Sequence record: ON529857.1
DNA: 64,000 nucleotides
Strand: one strand, 5' to 3'
The position numbers and the translations under genes are program-made. Below, piece by piece: positions 41,826 through 49,695 of this stretch. The notes under the pieces are model-generated. The model was not told the origin of the DNA. It made no database searches and saw only the letters and a program-made list of their open reading frames with translations. Within the stretch, counting starts at the first letter, position 1, and each line of letters starts with the position of its first letter.

Positions 41826-41911
41826 AGTCAAACGGTGTCCGTGAAAAAGGCTCTGCCCAGCAAAAACCGCTGTCAAAACAGAGCCTTAGAGGTATTGAGA
41901 AAGGGTTGTCA

Positions 41912-41951
41912 CTGTAACTAAATCAGGCGCGAACGTCAAGAATTACAACAG
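41912..41951 (-). promoter_or_regulatory. promoter of the nrdA-dut operon with an upstream 17-bp motif
   Basis: TTGACG-17-TACAGT; TGTTGTAATTCTTGACG is repeated identically at 57180-57196. Confidence 0.6.
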
Positions 41952-42000
41952 TCAATGTTGAAGATTGATTCCTTGACATCCGCCCTGAAAATTATGTGAC

Positions 42001-42246
42001 TCAACGCTCGTCGGGGAACTTCAGGTTGGCGGCCTTCAGGATGTCTCTGACATTGCAGAGCTTTCCATCCAGGGTGAACCCCAGCTTGGTCTCTTTCATG
42101 CGCGGCCCGAGAATGGCCTGAGCCTGCTCCATCAGCGGCGGCGGATCGTCGAAGGGGACGACCGGATGGTTGTCTTCGCGGGGGAGACGGAACTTGAGGT
42201 TCGGGTTTTTACCGTCGGCGTCCGCCGCTTGGGGTTTACGGGCCAC
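42001..42246 (-). CDS. hypothetical protein
   Basis: 81 aa; coupled to the upstream stop. Confidence 0.65.
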   Translation of the reverse strand: MARKPQAADADGKNPNLKFRLPREDNHPVVPFDDPPPLMEQAQAILGPRMKETKLGFTLDGKLCNVRDILKAANLKFPDER

Positions 42247-46742: not shown

Positions 46743-46812
46743 ATCCGGGCGTGTTCATCTTGACATCCGACGCCGTCGATCTTGGCGATCGGTTCCGTCA
46801 GGATTGGAATCG

Positions 46813-46844
46813 AAAAGAAAGCCCCGCCGCCGAAGCGGCGGGGC
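46813..46844 (-). terminator. terminator after the putative ssb gene
   Basis: GCCCCGCCGC-TTCG-GCGGCGGGGC-TTTCTTTT on the minus strand. Confidence 0.85.
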
Positions 46845-46860
46845 GTTCACTCAAGGTCGC

Positions 46861-47709
46861 TTAGAAGCGGCGACCACGAGGCGCAGCGGCGGGAGCCGCA
46901 GCCGCCGGGGCGGGCTTGGGCTCTTCAGCCGGCGCGGCGTTCGCCGCGCGGCCGGCGCCGGTCGACAGCGGCGCTTCACGACGTCCGCCTCGACGGACCG
47001 GCTCAGCCGGCACTTCTTCAACGACGGCTTCTTCGATTTCCGGAGCCGGCAGAGCCGCACGCTCTTCGACGGCGCCGCCCAGGGCGTCTTCATAGTCGTC
47101 CGGAGCACCTTCCTGATAGGAGAGGAACTCCTCGCGGGTGATCCAGCCGACGATGCGGAATTCCGGAGCGTGCTTGCGCAGCTTGCGGCCGCCTTCCTTC
47201 GGCGTGAACTCGAAGGTGGTCGAGCCCATCGACACGACCGGGACCATGCCGGGGTTCAGCTTGAACTGGCGACCGAAGTCCTTGATCACCGCTTCGAGCG
47301 CGCGGCTCTTGGACTTGTTGTTCGCCTGGAACAGCAGGGTCAGGGCTTCGCCTTCGATCGTGGTGAACTCGATCGTCTTCTGCTCCGACCAGCCGTCGTC
47401 CGGGCCGTAGGGACCGTGATCGGGCAGGTGGCCTTCCACCGGCGGCTTGCCTTCGGCGATGCCCAGCATGATCTCTTCCTGGACCTTGCCGCCCTTCCAG
47501 CAAATCCAGCCGCGCTTGAAGCTGTCGAGGTCCATGGCGGCCTGGGTGCCCGCCTCGAACGGCGTGTCGTCGGCGCCGTAGACGTAGGTGCCGTCGTTGC
47601 CGCTGAATTTCAGGAACAGCTTGTTGCTGCCGCCGCCGCTGTAGCTCTGGGCCTCAGCGGCCAGCGCGGCGTAGTAATCCTCGTGAGAGGTGATGAGAGC
47701 ATTGCTCAT
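46861..47709 (-). CDS. putative single-stranded DNA-binding protein
   Basis: Lies in the polymerase/nuclease/helicase module; aromatic-rich beta core; long acidic Ala/Pro tail; SSB role inferred from context. Confidence 0.55.
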   Translation of the reverse strand: MSNALITSHEDYYAALAAEAQSYSGGGSNKLFLKFSGNDGTYVYGADDTPFEAGTQAAMDLDSFKRGWICWKGGKVQEEIMLGIAEGKPPVEGHLPDHGPYGPDDGWSEQKTIEFTTIEGEALTLLFQANNKSKSRALEAVIKDFGRQFKLNPGMVPVVSMGSTTFEFTPKEGGRKLRKHAPEFRIVGWITREEFLSYQEGAPDDYEDALGGAVEERAALPAPEIEEAVVEEVPAEPVRRGGRREAPLSTGAGRAANAAPAEEPKPAPAAAAPAAAPRGRRF

Positions 47710-47983
47710 GTGGGGTCTGACTCTAACTCTAAACCTAACTACTAGGTCTATTTCTAAGGGGTGCCCGGCCAGTAATCCGGCCGGGCATGCTAAGGCTTCG
47801 TCTATGCCTAACTGCTAGTCGCTGCTTCTTATTACTATCGGCTAACTGACTAAAACTAAACTACTACACTACTCGACACTTTTCAACTAACTTCTACACC
47901 TAACCAGAACTATTATTCTAACTCTAGGTTACTACTCTACTAACCGCTAACCACTAAATACTAACTGACTTCTAGGTTACGCT
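47710..47983 (-). other. strand-skewed, AT-rich non-coding leader with CTAA/CTA(C) repeats and one GC hairpin
   Basis: Plus strand nearly devoid of G over about 270 nt; hairpin GTGCCCGGCC-N8-GGCCGGGCAT near 47760-47790. Confidence 0.85.
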
Positions 47984-49078
47984 TTACTCTTCAGGGCCTT
48001 TTGGACCGTTCTCCCGGAACGTGAGGCGATCGTGACCGTCCGACGTCTTGGTGAATTCCTCCACCGGAAGCCCAGCGACCCGCATAGCTTCGACATCGTA
48101 AGTCGTCCTGCCCTTGATCCAGGAGAGGGACACCTTGGCGAATCCCGGAACCTCCGCTCTTCGCACCCCTGTTTGCCGGAACCATTCCTTCAACCTTTCG
48201 GTCGCTTTCCTGTGTTCCGTCTCCGAGGCCTTGCGAGCGTCGGCGGCCGCACGTTCATCCCGCAGGATGGCCTCGAATTCTTCCATGATCGGCAGCGGCG
48301 TATTCTCGAAGTTGGCGTGACCGCTCGTCGGGGTCGCCGCCGCCGTGGCCTTGGCGCACGCGCTGGTGAAGGGGCAGTAGTCGCAACCGCCCTCCACCTT
48401 ACCTTCGGGAAAAATGTCGCTGGCGTTCTTGATAGTGTAGACGGATCGCGCTCTTTCCTTCGCGGCGTCGTAGGTCCTCTGGTCGAACGGGACCACGAAG
48501 ATTTCGATGTCGTCAAAGAAAGAAGCGTCGATGTAAACGATCACAGCATAGGCGGGCTTATACTGCGTTGTTTCACGCGTAATACCCATCTGGATCATCA
48601 CTTGCCCCCGGTGAATGCTTTTCTCTTCGCGTAGATTTACGCGGGGGTCGATGGATTTGATCTCGAAATTGAAGCACCCCGCACCGCCCAGGCTGGGAAC
48701 GCCGTAGAGCGCCAGGGCGTCGTCGTCGGCGTCGATCACCAGCCCGTCCGGCGTGGCGGTCAGGGGGGCGTCCGGCGCCTTGAGCGTCTGCTGATTGTCG
48801 CCGCCCCAGATCAGGCGCGTGTCGTAGTAGTAGTTCTCCAGGAACCACTTCACGCCCGGCTCGGCGAAATACTGTTCGATCAGGTCACCGCGTTGCAGGG
48901 CGCCCCAGCTGTCCTTGTAGTCCGAATTCTTCTCGCCGCCGTTCTTGGCGAACCAGGCCTTACGCAGACAACCGAATGCCTCGGAAGCCCCCATGGTCTT
49001 GGAGCGGTCGTGCGCCCAGACCTTCTGGTGACCCTTGACAAAGGTGTCGTAGGCTTCCTTGAAGTCGATAACGGCCAT
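47984..49078 (-). CDS. PD-(D/E)XK / Cas4-like exonuclease
   Basis: GASEAFGCLRK, GDLIE, ATPDGL, FEIKS, HRGQVMIQM, CDYCPFTSAC. Confidence 0.82.
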   Translation of the reverse strand: MAVIDFKEAYDTFVKGHQKVWAHDRSKTMGASEAFGCLRKAWFAKNGGEKNSDYKDSWGALQRGDLIEQYFAEPGVKWFLENYYYDTRLIWGGDNQQTLKAPDAPLTATPDGLVIDADDDALALYGVPSLGGAGCFNFEIKSIDPRVNLREEKSIHRGQVMIQMGITRETTQYKPAYAVIVYIDASFFDDIEIFVVPFDQRTYDAAKERARSVYTIKNASDIFPEGKVEGGCDYCPFTSACAKATAAATPTSGHANFENTPLPIMEEFEAILRDERAAADARKASETEHRKATERLKEWFRQTGVRRAEVPGFAKVSLSWIKGRTTYDVEAMRVAGLPVEEFTKTSDGHDRLTFRENGPKGPEE

Positions 49079-49107
49079 AAAATTACGTGACTCAATACCC
49101 GGCCCGA

Positions 49108-49695
49108 TTAAGCTGCGCGGGCAAAATCCTGGAGGTAGTAGAAGAGATCGCGGCAATCCTTGACGTCGCCCACAGCGCGGTGAGCGGCCGTCGGCGCGCG
49201 ATCCAGAAGATGCGGGATCGCCAATTCCAGCTTGGGCCAAGCATAGCCCTTCTTGCCGAACTTGGAGGGGAACTTGCAGACCGGAACCGCAGCCAGCATG
49301 GTGCAGAACGGCTTCTTGCCGGCGAACACGTCAATCTTGGGATTGCCCGAGATGAGCCGCGCCGCATTGTTGATCACGTTGACATCGAACTCGATATTGT
49401 GCGCCACCATCAATTCGGCTGCCATGACCATGTCGCAGAACACGTCCAGCGCGGCGTTCTCGCCGACGCCGATCGCCTGAGACTTCTCCGTCGTGGTGCC
49501 GTGCACCTTGGCGGAGGCATCCGGGATCGGCTGATCCCGATACACGATCAAGTCGATGCGCATGACCTCTTCACGCGCCTCCAGGTCTTCCAGGATGGCG
49601 GCGATCTGAACGATGCGCGGTTGATCTTCATGGCCGCATGGAAGATTCTTGTCCCACAGGCCGGTGGTCTCGGTGTCGAAGAACAGCCCCAACAT
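49108..49695 (-). CDS. DEDDh 3'-5' exonuclease (DnaQ-like)
   Basis: FFDTETTG, VAHNIEFD, PKLELA, AHRAVGDV. Confidence 0.9.
   Translation of the reverse strand: MLGLFFDTETTGLWDKNLPCGHEDQPRIVQIAAILEDLEAREEVMRIDLIVYRDQPIPDASAKVHGTTTEKSQAIGVGENAALDVFCDMVMAAELMVAHNIEFDVNVINNAARLISGNPKIDVFAGKKPFCTMLAAVPVCKFPSKFGKKGYAWPKLELAIPHLLDRAPTAAHRAVGDVKDCRDLFYYLQDFARAA

Follow-up and report, generated by a model that had tools for sequence, protein, structure and literature searches.

The spacer in front of a putative SSB gene in the Brevundimonas jumbo phage vB_BpoS-Kikimora (genome 312,615 bp) carries a dense array of UAG triplets on the sense strand, and we propose, with a probability of roughly 40%, that this stretch is an RNA leader controlling the output of the SSB, most likely by self-repression in the style of T4 gp32. 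By whatever route, the leader probably sets the amount of the putative SSB that is made. The window analyzed here is a 64,000-nucleotide stretch of the phage genome (record ON529857.1), in which a preliminary description had proposed a T4 gene 32-like autoregulatory leader. The 274-nt UAG-repeat stretch is real and turned out to be stronger than stated there. The parts of the locus, listed from the upstream gene downward, are as follows:

47984..49078, minus strand: upstream gene KIKIMORA_03210, Cas4/RecE-like PD-(D/E)XK exonuclease (ORF list, GenBank annotation)
47810..47983, minus strand: distal UAG array, C-poor and weakly folding (TAG counts, spacing, fold energy, uniqueness)
47793..47809, minus strand: small stem-loop, stem AGGC / GCCU, conserved loop AUAGACGAA (independent MFE folds of relatives)
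47762..47787, minus strand: GC hairpin with 9 perfect pairs (inverted repeat)
47758..47761, minus strand: CCCC run directly 3' of the GC hairpin (in most relatives, a C-rich tail follows the hairpin)
47710..47757, minus strand: proximal UAG lattice with 7 UAG, spanning the weak purine-rich ribosome-binding region
46861..47709, minus strand: KIKIMORA_03200 (P0001, 282 aa), putative SSB gene (translation, model, fold searches)
46821..46844, minus strand: canonical intrinsic terminator (terminator scan and hairpin survey)

Positions 47710-47983, where the element had been placed before, are exactly the entire spacer between the exonuclease gene and the 282-aa gene and run from the TAA stop codon of the former (47984-47986) to the ATG of the latter (47707-47709), both on the minus strand. 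The spacer sits in the replication module and adjoins the T7-like polymerase gene. KIKIMORA_03210 matches the RecE-like exonuclease family phrog_434 with an E-value of 2e-34, and a longer ORF of this gene extends to 49240. The putative SSB gene is the end of a co-directional minus-strand block that starts at the DNA polymerase gene and is closed by a strong terminator, which is located 17 nt 3' of the SSB stop codon and consists of 10 GC pairs with the loop TTCG followed by TTTCTTTT.

The GC content is 0.43 at 47701-48000 compared with 0.63 for the genome, and the spacer is both the second most AT-rich 250-nt window of all 312,615 bp and the site of the strongest GC skew genome-wide (-0.37 on the plus strand), in agreement with the AT-richness and extreme strand skew noted in the preliminary description. 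The repeats UAG, GUUAG and AGUAG, of which the mRNA-like strand was said to be built, were also recovered by counting: the 274 nt of the minus (sense) strand contain 31 TAG, 16 TTAG, 10 GTTAG and 5 AGTAG. Mononucleotide shuffling leads to an expectation of 6.2 +/- 2.3 TAG with a maximum of 15 in 5000 shuffles, and even dinucleotide-preserving shuffles reach only 22.5 +/- 2.2 (z = 3.9). The triplets are spread over all three frames and are regularly spaced, with gaps of 6 nt (8 times) and 7 nt (6 times) and a median of 6.5 nt; four GTTAG/TTTAG units in the distal array at 47940-47965 follow each other at exactly 7 nt. Most of the 24 triplets located 5' of the GC hairpin fall within 47810..47983, and the remaining 7 lie 3' of it. 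A comparison of 120-nt windows on both strands revealed a peak of 18 TAG in the spacer and at most 7 anywhere else in the genome. Similarly, 16 of the 18 genome-wide matches to the pattern TAG-N2-5-TAG-N2-5-TAG fall in this spacer, compared with 25-30 occurrences of the reversed control pattern on each strand, which indicates that TAG is otherwise avoided in the genome. Neither strand of 47500-48200 matched any Rfam 15 family up to E = 10, and we found no published description of this UAG-repeat leader in the literature.

Two terms used for this strand in the preliminary description have to be toned down. "Nearly C-free" is overstated, as C makes up 15% of the stretch overall, 13% once the hairpin is set aside and 10% over the 192 nt on its 5' side, and "unstructured" is better worded as weakly structured. 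The distal 192 nt fold at -35.5 kcal/mol, whereas 400 stretches of this length sampled from the genome average -73.4 +/- 9.8 kcal/mol and none of them folded more weakly; the energy of the distal part matches its own composition (shuffles: -37.7 +/- 3.7 kcal/mol). The proximal stretch folds at -8.3 kcal/mol versus a genome mean of -14.7 kcal/mol, and one GAGTC site is present in the proximal lattice at 47719-47723.

The stable GC hairpin, announced at about 50 nt before the start codon, was found to end 52 nt before the ATG and can be extended from 9 perfect pairs to 11 pairs including one G.U pair (47760-47789). There is no U tract on its 3' side and the terminator scan does not call it; unlike the GC hairpin, many true terminators of this genome have U tracts, and by the standard of this genome it is therefore no intrinsic terminator. 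The proposed pseudoknot fared less well. The complementarity exists, as the loop GAUUACU can pair with the downstream AGUAGUU over 7 pairs including two G.U pairs, but it lies within chance (P 0.055 to 0.19) and is not conserved, the best pairing between loop and downstream region being 2-4 pairs in 8 relatives. We therefore rejected a pseudoknot, which is seen in Kikimora only, as nucleation element and regard the structure as a plain hairpin. The small stem-loop upstream of it was recovered in relatives by separate MFE folds with differing stems (GGUCU/AGACC, GGACUU/AAGGUCC, AGGUC/GGCCU, GCCU/AGGC). The motif UAGACGAAG lies within it at 47796-47804 and was dismissed as a general phage signal, as it occurs only 3 times in the genome.

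A consensus scan did not detect a sigma-70-like promoter in the spacer, and the two promoter classes derived for this phage, TTGACAC-N14-CCTAGAA and TTGACA-N10-CGTTYCTTTACA, are absent from it. The -10 element of the early promoters, CCTAGAA, itself has TAG as its core. The proximal TAG could be taken as the -10 element of a leaderless transcript, but this reading fails because the distance from TAG to ATG varies between 0 and 12 nt among relatives.

The leader is conserved in kind. All 17 related loci inspected, which share between 42% and 98% identity, have the same order of array, GC hairpin, purine/UAG stretch and ATG, and most of them also have a C-rich tail between hairpin and purine/UAG stretch (for example CCCC, CAUCCCACC, AACUCC, UCCCCUCC or CAAUCCC). 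These loci include Gurke, Domovoi, CcrPW, Colossus, Karma, phiCbK, Bajun, BL10 and Rogue as well as L006, L007, L010, L012, L014 and L051-L053. The array unit is UAG in most lineages and UAAG in the CcrSC/BL9-like lineage. Triple-TAG matches fall in the equivalent spacer in 3 of 4 cases in Domovoi and 3 of 6 in phiCbK, L051 has 8 consecutive TAG at gaps of 6-7 nt, and TAG motifs are also found 3-25 nt from the ATG in the relatives. In every relative the motif is located on the sense strand and reaches the start codon. Judged from per-sequence folds and stem lists, the GC hairpin is present in 14 of 14 relatives with 9-13 pairs at 17-53 nt before the ATG, and in three further relatives from metagenomes. 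Its stem has at least 8 different sequences among the 14, some with G.U pairs, and pairing is kept despite the changes, as in the replacement of a U-A pair in phiCbK by C-G in BL10. RNAalifold on a MAFFT alignment of the hairpin gave no consensus structure because MAFFT misaligned stems that differ in sequence. Composition is less constant: C-poor leaders are restricted to Kikimora and Gurke, phiCbK-type leaders are C-rich and keep CCUAG repeats without being AU-rich, and the spacers of relatives can be as short as 111 nt and are not AT-rich. Outside the subfamily, UAG enrichment 5' of distant homologues is mixed and weak. More distant homologues of the protein mostly have plain promoters instead of an array, so the presence of the array does not go with the protein family in general. 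Taken as a group, the sense-strand position, the reach to the ATG, the variable but paired stems, the G.U pairs and the weak folding are signs of an element that acts at the RNA level.

These signs also bear on the possibility that the stretch acts as DNA, be it as an origin or unwinding element, as a priming or SSB-loading zone or as a row of -10-like elements (YTAGAA). Origins of the T7 and T4 type combine transcription with an AT-rich tract, and an origin at this site would be opened by transcription through such a tract, with an RNA that is G-rich relative to C and prone to form R-loops. A zone for SSB loading or priming would lie on the displaced strand, and the -10-like elements would make the host RNA polymerase pause or become trapped. 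In favor of a role as DNA, the spacer ranks second in AT-richness among the windows of the genome, shows the strongest strand skew and lies inside the replication module beside the T7-like polymerase gene, and since TAG is the core of the early-promoter -10 element CCTAGAA, a reading at the level of DNA or RNA polymerase keeps some weight; 4 of the 31 TAG stand in a TAGAA context (counted by eye). However, the cumulative GC skew reaches its extremes at other places (record positions 242,539 and 312,378), an unsystematic reading of the spacer by eye noticed no DnaA-box or CtrA-box (TTAA-N7-TTAA), and a -35 partner is absent. Furthermore, a period of 6-7 nt is unsuited to double-strand binding, the motif keeps to one strand up to the start codon in every relative, the G.U pairs of the stems would be A.C mismatches on the other strand, and the relatives do without AT-richness in spacers down to 111 nt. 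A replication origin had already been named as the alternative in the preliminary description; only AT-richness and strand skew speak for an origin, and the cumulative-skew extremes, the sense-strand motif and the G.U pairs speak against it. Overall, we consider a function as DNA quite unlikely.

The proposal of an SSB leader gains weight from the protein encoded downstream, which had been suggested as an SSB with structure prediction for an OB fold as the check. KIKIMORA_03200, which matches phrog_9528, is predicted to begin with a helix at the N-terminus, followed by an OB core at about residues 30-200; an acidic linker then leads to a disordered tail with a conserved RGRRF at its end. The C-terminal consensus is conserved, as are the aromatic residues F35, W71, W107 and W189. 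The AlphaFold2 model shows an OB domain with block-mean pLDDT values of at least 91 for residues 30-200. The closest solved structure is the recombination directionality factor (RDF) gp3 of phiC31 (Z 9.2 over 152 residues), and further matches were obtained with the OB folds of BRCA2 (Z 5.7) and with gp32 of T4 and RB69 (Z 4.4 and 4.1). With a fold like the phiC31 gp3 family and, after it, BRCA2 and gp32, the protein is a good SSB candidate, and we assume that it is likely the SSB of this phage, an assignment that rests on the predicted fold. A protein of the gp3 family from TG1 binds single-stranded but not double-stranded DNA in experiments and has a gp32-like core (PMC11795197).

Sequence searches were silent throughout. 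Pfam, NCBIfam and PDB gave no match with the single protein, nor did Pfam and PDB with its alignment or profile, and hhalign of the family alignment against phiC31 gp3 returned a probability of 0.4%. The Pfam profiles for SSB, gp32 and Enc34 matched nothing in the whole genome; the same holds for PF18897 (Gp3-like), which likewise found nothing in control genomes and is thus a weak search. In a protein atlas, the gp3-like family appeared as a low-score lead (0.83). The phiC31 gp3/TG1 gp25 family, in which the RDF of a serine integrase is also an SSB (PF18897), nevertheless remains the best structural counterpart. In phiC31, too, the gene belongs to the replication module and comes just after an exonuclease gene (gene 1 exonuclease, then gene 3), and in both families an N-terminal extension precedes the OB core. 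The similarity is confined to the fold, with none at the sequence level. Unlike the TG1 protein, for which a zinc site is predicted, KIKIMORA_03200 has a single Cys and we saw no Cys/His cluster, and the phiC31 gene 3 spacer differs from that of Kikimora in having no UAG array (one TAG in 181 nt examined).

How such a protein could act on its own leader is suggested by T4. The gp32 proteins of T4 and RB69 repress their own mRNA by means of a folded element together with UUAAA repeats that form a lattice across the ribosome-binding site (PMC535899), and the site size of gp32 is about 7 nt (PMC4627071). For Kikimora, we infer that the leader is transcribed and that KIKIMORA_03200 binds it. The RNA would form a weakly structured lattice with a UAG every 6-7 nt or so, which is broken by the small hairpin with the AGACGAA loop and by the stable GC hairpin and resumes over the ribosome-binding region up to the AUG. 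Once free SSB exceeds the available single-stranded DNA, monomers could occupy this lattice next to one another, each taking up 6-7 nt and thus near the site size of T4 gp32, with the GC hairpin as boundary or nucleation point. The bound protein would then cover the ribosome-binding site and shut off its own translation. It is also possible that the AU-rich array is a cut site of the polycistronic RNA and that the leader is processed to a message capped by the hairpin, comparable to the cut at -71 in T4 gene 32.

This proposal is in line with several features that the locus shares with the gene 32 operators of T4 and RB69. The element lies directly 5' of a (here putative) phage SSB gene, which encodes a protein with an OB core like that of gp32, a folded element is followed by weakly structured short repeats that cover the ribosome-binding site (7 UAG in 48 nt), the repeat period of 6-7 nt is close to the size of a gp32 site, and, as in T4, the gene closes a polycistronic block and is preceded by a long spacer. 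On the other hand, the repeat is UAG (UAAG in one lineage) instead of UUAAA, a GC hairpin and a small conserved stem-loop take the place of the pseudoknot, up to 31 units are present compared with a handful in T4, and three quarters of them are located 5' of the hairpin; there is no sequence homology to T4 gene 32 in protein or RNA. Of the T4-like plan put forward before, the folded element and the weak repeats reaching the ribosome-binding region thus hold, and the pseudoknot and the placement of the repeats do not. The 24 of 31 UAG 5' of the hairpin speak against self-repression, as a gp32-type operator needs nothing there. Furthermore, general SSBs bind without sequence preference and the T4 model therefore does not predict a strict UAG core, which could point to a different, sequence-specific binder.

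The position of the gene within its block also agrees with a leader that raises expression without any feedback by the SSB. The AU-rich, weakly folded array would let RNase E enter and separate the SSB cistron from the low-copy cistrons of the polymerase and exonuclease, the GC hairpin would cap and stabilize the new 5' end, the unstructured purine-rich stretch would offer ribosomes a standby site and the closely spaced stop codons would keep stray ones off this stretch, with far more SSB than operon partners as the outcome. The T4 gene 32 mRNA is a precedent, since RNase E cuts it at -71, after which it is unusually stable and becomes the most stable T4 message (PMC3014915). The SSB gene comes last and is followed by a strong terminator, the spacer has no promoter-like site, its hairpin lacks the U tract of the true terminators, the fold of the array is much weaker than the genome background and TAG stops occur in all three frames, all of which speak for such a leader. 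Composition alone, however, explains the weak structure but not the five-fold excess of one trinucleotide, and one stop per frame would suffice for ribosome release. The spacing of 6-7 nt and the replacement by UAAG in one lineage are left unexplained, and phiCbK-type leaders keep their CCUAG repeats although they are not AU-rich. We regard expression control by processing and stability alone as possible but doubtful.

A sequence-specific reader of the array has a well-described counterpart in Bacillus. The HutP sites of the Bacillus subtilis hut RNA are UAG triplets with 4-nt spacers (period 7) that flank a stable GC-rich stem, and HutP binds these two XAG-rich sites on either side of the terminator stem and pries it open (PMC2425495). 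By analogy, another RNA-binding protein of phage or host might wrap the UAG on both sides of the GC stem and thereby act as a timed switch during infection, be it for read-through, for the stability of the RNA or for translation of the SSB cistron. The layout resembles that of HutP, with triplets at a modal gap of 6-7 nt in two sets flanking a GC-rich stem, 24 on the 5' and 7 on the 3' side, and this flanking arrangement is found in all relatives; in addition, the strict UAG core suits a specific binder better than a general SSB. In RNAs bound by HutP or TRAP, a multi-subunit protein reads one triplet after the other. Unlike these systems, the Kikimora hairpin has no U tract and is thus no intrinsic terminator by the standard of this genome, and the array is much longer, with far more triplets than a hexamer or 11-mer ring would need. 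TRAP spacers are 2-3 nt, not 3-4 nt, and to our knowledge neither system is known in alphaproteobacteria, the group of the host. Profiles for HutP (PF09021) and TRAP (PF02081) had no match in the 312.6-kb genome, and no candidate binder was identified. Another RNA-binding regulator seems quite unlikely to us.

A variant of the self-repression proposal goes further. The SSB itself or a partner could read RNA or single-stranded DNA in register, with one monomer per UAG-centered heptad, and the long tandem lattice flanking the hairpin on either side would then be a graded sensor of free SSB. We consider this unlikely, but if it were true, an OB-fold SSB family regarded as non-specific would have evolved sequence-registered binding to its own leader, with a motif that co-varies by lineage (mostly UAG, UAAG in the CcrSC/BL9-like lineage), and jumbo phages would possess translational operators of a new class, built as a repeat lattice.

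Self-repression by gp32 is a classic case of a general nucleic-acid binder that selects its own message, and its mechanism is still debated. Should self-control apply to Kikimora, a second, independent and easily mutated system with a much longer and more regular lattice in front of a structurally related SSB would be at hand. Under one of the other explanations, the stretch would mark an origin-type element, the first to be mapped in this phage subfamily, or an RNA-binding regulator that is new there. The UAG lattice with its period of 6-7 nt is also a candidate for a portable regulatory part in GC-rich alphaproteobacteria. Caulobacter biology uses phages of the phiCbK group as standard tools, and with this locus the group gains a candidate SSB whose gene is preceded by a conserved and conspicuous control region. 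No SSB was found in the phiCbK phages, which carry a T7-like polymerase, in the analysis of Gill et al. 2012 (PMC3556154). At present, the candidate is labeled as "hypothetical" or "nucleotidyltransferase".

The UAG-array spacer of Brevundimonas phage vB_BpoS-Kikimora (ON529857.1, 312,615 bp; subfamily Dolichocephalovirinae, phiCbK group) sits within the replication module, where the surrounding genes are all on the minus strand, and runs exactly from the TAA of an exonuclease gene to the ATG of a 282-aa gene, as the preliminary description had placed it. Window position 1 corresponds to record position 124,001.

Order of genes and features around the spacer (all minus strand)
Cytosine methylase
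T7-like family A DNA polymerase
Small ORF
RNase T-like exonuclease
47984-49240 (-), ORF of the Cas4/RecE-like exonuclease
47710-47983 (-), 274-nt spacer
46861-47709 (-), KIKIMORA_03200, 282 aa, the putative SSB
46821-46844 (-), textbook terminator, 17 nt 3' of the stop codon of KIKIMORA_03200
Dda-like helicase, dNMP kinase and ThyX

The exonuclease ORF reaches a TTG at 49240 (418 aa), and the GenBank start at 49078 (364 aa) is probably right, because the PHROG match begins only at residue 60-61 of the 418-aa form.

On its sense strand the spacer contains 31 TAG, 16 TTAG, 10 GTTAG and 5 AGTAG, which bears out the UAG, GUUAG and AGUAG repeats noticed earlier; mononucleotide shuffles predict 6.2 ± 2.3 TAG (highest of 5000 shuffles, 15) and dinucleotide-preserving shuffles 22.5 ± 2.2 (z = 3.9 for the observed number). 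Neighbouring TAG are most often 6 or 7 nt apart (median 6.5), pair distances have further peaks at 13-14 and 19 nt, and four units at 47940-47965 follow each other with a period of exactly 7 nt. A scan of both strands of the whole genome, joined from the record pieces, gave a maximum of 18 TAG per 120-nt window in the spacer and at most 7 elsewhere, and 16 of the 18 genome matches to TAG-N2-5-TAG-N2-5-TAG fall inside it. The reversed control pattern occurs 25-30 times per strand, and TAG is therefore avoided in the rest of the genome. Among 250-nt windows across the genome the spacer ranks second for AT-richness, and its GC skew is stronger than anywhere else, in agreement with the preliminary description, which overstated matters in calling it nearly C-free (C content 10-15%).

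Parts of the putative leader, from the 5' end of the RNA-like strand (minus strand)
Distal UAG array
47793-47809 (-), small stem-loop with the loop AUAGACGAA
47762-47787 (-), GC hairpin of 9 perfect pairs
CCCC run, 3' of the GC hairpin
48-nt proximal stretch with 7 UAG over a weak purine-rich ribosome-binding region, followed by the AUG

The hairpin proposed about 50 nt 5' of the start codon is thus present, and the 192 nt 5' of it have a folding energy of -35.5 kcal/mol, whereas none of 400 equal-length stretches of the genome (-73.4 ± 9.8 kcal/mol) folds more weakly. Dozens of GC hairpins elsewhere in the genome are followed by a U tract; since the tract is absent here, the leader hairpin does not belong with these local terminators. 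A leader acting through RNA processing and stability alone would account for the hairpin, the weak folding and the placement at an operon end, but leaves the UAG motif and its period unexplained.

The same spacer was compared in 17 related loci, from nine GenBank phages (Gurke, Domovoi, CcrPW, Colossus, Karma, phiCbK, Bajun, BL10, Rogue), five viral contigs (L006, L007, L010, L012, L014) and three metagenome contigs (L051-L053; two of these loci are on contigs over 200 kb). All 17 keep the order of array, GC hairpin, usually a C-rich tail, purine-rich stretch and ATG, with 17-53 nt between hairpin and ATG and usually at least one TAG in the purine-rich stretch. The arrays comprise between about 5 and 31 units; in L051 eight consecutive TAG follow each other with gaps of 6-7 nt, and the L012 and L014 lineage has no TAG and 11-13 UAAG/CUAAG units instead. 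The triple-TAG pattern is concentrated in the spacers of Domovoi (3 of 4 genome matches) and phiCbK (3 of 6), and Gurke differs from Kikimora at 3 of 274 positions. The hairpin stems comprise at least eight different sequences with pairing kept in all: a U-A pair of phiCbK is C-G in BL10 and a G-C pair is G.U, and other stems contain G.U pairs as well. A small hairpin with variable stems around a conserved ...AGACGA... loop is also found in Domovoi, CcrPW, L007, L012 and L014. Beyond the subfamily, most homologues of the protein lack the array and have ordinary promoters. From this comparison the spacer emerges as a conserved, fast-evolving feature of Dolichocephalovirinae; it is real, unique in its own genome and conserved in kind, and the arrangement keeps to the sense strand and carries signs of RNA structure.

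The AT-richness and strand skew suggest a role in DNA, as an origin, priming zone or polymerase trap, and CCTAGAA, found in the present analysis to be the -10 element of the early promoters of the phage, points the same way. However, the motif is restricted to one strand and reaches the ATG, the stems contain G.U pairs, the spacers of relatives can be short and GC-normal, and the global skew extremes lie elsewhere. The 250-nt window with the highest AT content in the genome (record 312,259-312,508, GC 0.40) adjoins the cumulative GC skew maximum at record 312,378, and is therefore a more orthodox candidate than the putative SSB leader for an origin or the boundary of a terminal repeat.

KIKIMORA_03200 has no sequence match in Pfam, NCBIfam or PDB and matches phrog_9528, labelled 'nucleotidyltransferase'. 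An AlphaFold2 model built with 39 homologues (mean pLDDT at least 91 in each 10-residue block of residues 30-200) gave an OB fold, as the SSB assignment had required: its sole significant Foldseek match in the PDB is 9teh chain I, the phiC31 RDF gp3 (E 2.7e-4), with weak OB-fold matches ranking below. A second, independent structural aligner placed the same chain first (Z 9.2, 152 residues), followed by BRCA2 OB domains (5.7, 5.0), T4 gp32 (4.4), RB69 gp32 (4.1) and numerous SSB and RPA domains. MacDonald et al. give the same ranking for TG1 RDF, a gp3-family protein that binds ssDNA, not dsDNA (PMC11795197). As hhalign detected no sequence-level similarity to phiC31 gp3, the modeled link is structural only. 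The N-terminal helix preceding the core, the conserved aromatics (F35, W71, W107, W189), the acidic linker and the disordered tail with its conserved RGRRF end seem reminiscent of gp32 and other phage SSBs. We thus predict from the model that this family, annotated across Dolichocephalovirinae as 'hypothetical' or '(polyribo)nucleotide nucleotidyltransferase' (e.g., phiCbK gp119, L044:6846-7925), consists of OB-fold SSBs of the phiC31 gp3/gp32 structural type. The Pfam profiles SSB, gp32, Enc34 and Gp3-like found no match in the whole Kikimora genome, and Gill et al. detected no SSB in phiCbK phages despite a T7-like polymerase (PMC3556154), a gap in that 2012 genome paper which the family, if it is an SSB, would fill.

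Anatomy, conservation and analogy make an RNA leader controlling SSB output the best-supported reading, and we put the probability that it acts in cis as an RNA element at about 0.7. The nearest precedent is gene 32 of T4/RB69, where gp32 loads cooperatively onto a weakly structured stretch with UUAAA repeats that lies 3' of a folded element and spans the ribosome-binding site (PMC535899); gp32 has a site size of ~7 nt (PMC4627071), and an RNase E cut at -71 yields an unusually stable mRNA (PMC3014915). The proposed likeness to T4 holds for the layout and for the proximal UAG lattice, which overlies the ribosome-binding region, and the period of 6-7 nt would fit one SSB monomer per UAG unit. 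In contrast to T4, no conserved pseudoknot between the hairpin loop and downstream sequence was found, three quarters of the array units lie 5' of the hairpin, and the trinucleotide core is strict. Self-repression in the manner of gp32 is, by analogy, the leading specific mechanism, at somewhat less than even odds. Because a general SSB would not need a strict core of this kind, the array may alternatively be read by an RNA-binding protein of the HutP kind; HutP recognizes UAG triplets, separated by 4-nt spacers, that flank a GC-rich stem on either side (PMC2425495), but no HutP or TRAP homologue was found in the phage genome. Our literature search found no paper describing this array, and the feature is most likely a new form of leader control of an SSB gene. 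In phiC31, as in phiCbK-type phages, an exonuclease gene is soon followed by a gp3-type SSB gene (NC_001978 genes 1-3; L050:1821-3833), which may point to an ancient recombination pair of exonuclease and SSB.

Outside the window, about 25 near-identical early-gene spacers (record 273,000-304,000) consist of a GC hairpin terminator, the possibly CtrA-type box GTTAACCTTAAC, an A-rich tract, TTGACAC, 14 nt, CCTAGAA or CCCCTACAC, and a final GGAGACACCC-ATG. A second promoter class, TTGACA-N10-CGTTYCTTTACA, is scattered across record 7,000-98,000. The replication-module spacers at 49080-49111, 41827-42004 and 46744-46864 (-) share two short motifs that fall outside both of these sigma-70-like classes:

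TTGAGTCAC(G/A)TAATTT (-), including a GANTC methylation site
GGATGTCAAG (-)

These may be control sites of middle genes; Kikimora encodes GcrA-like and MotA-like proteins.
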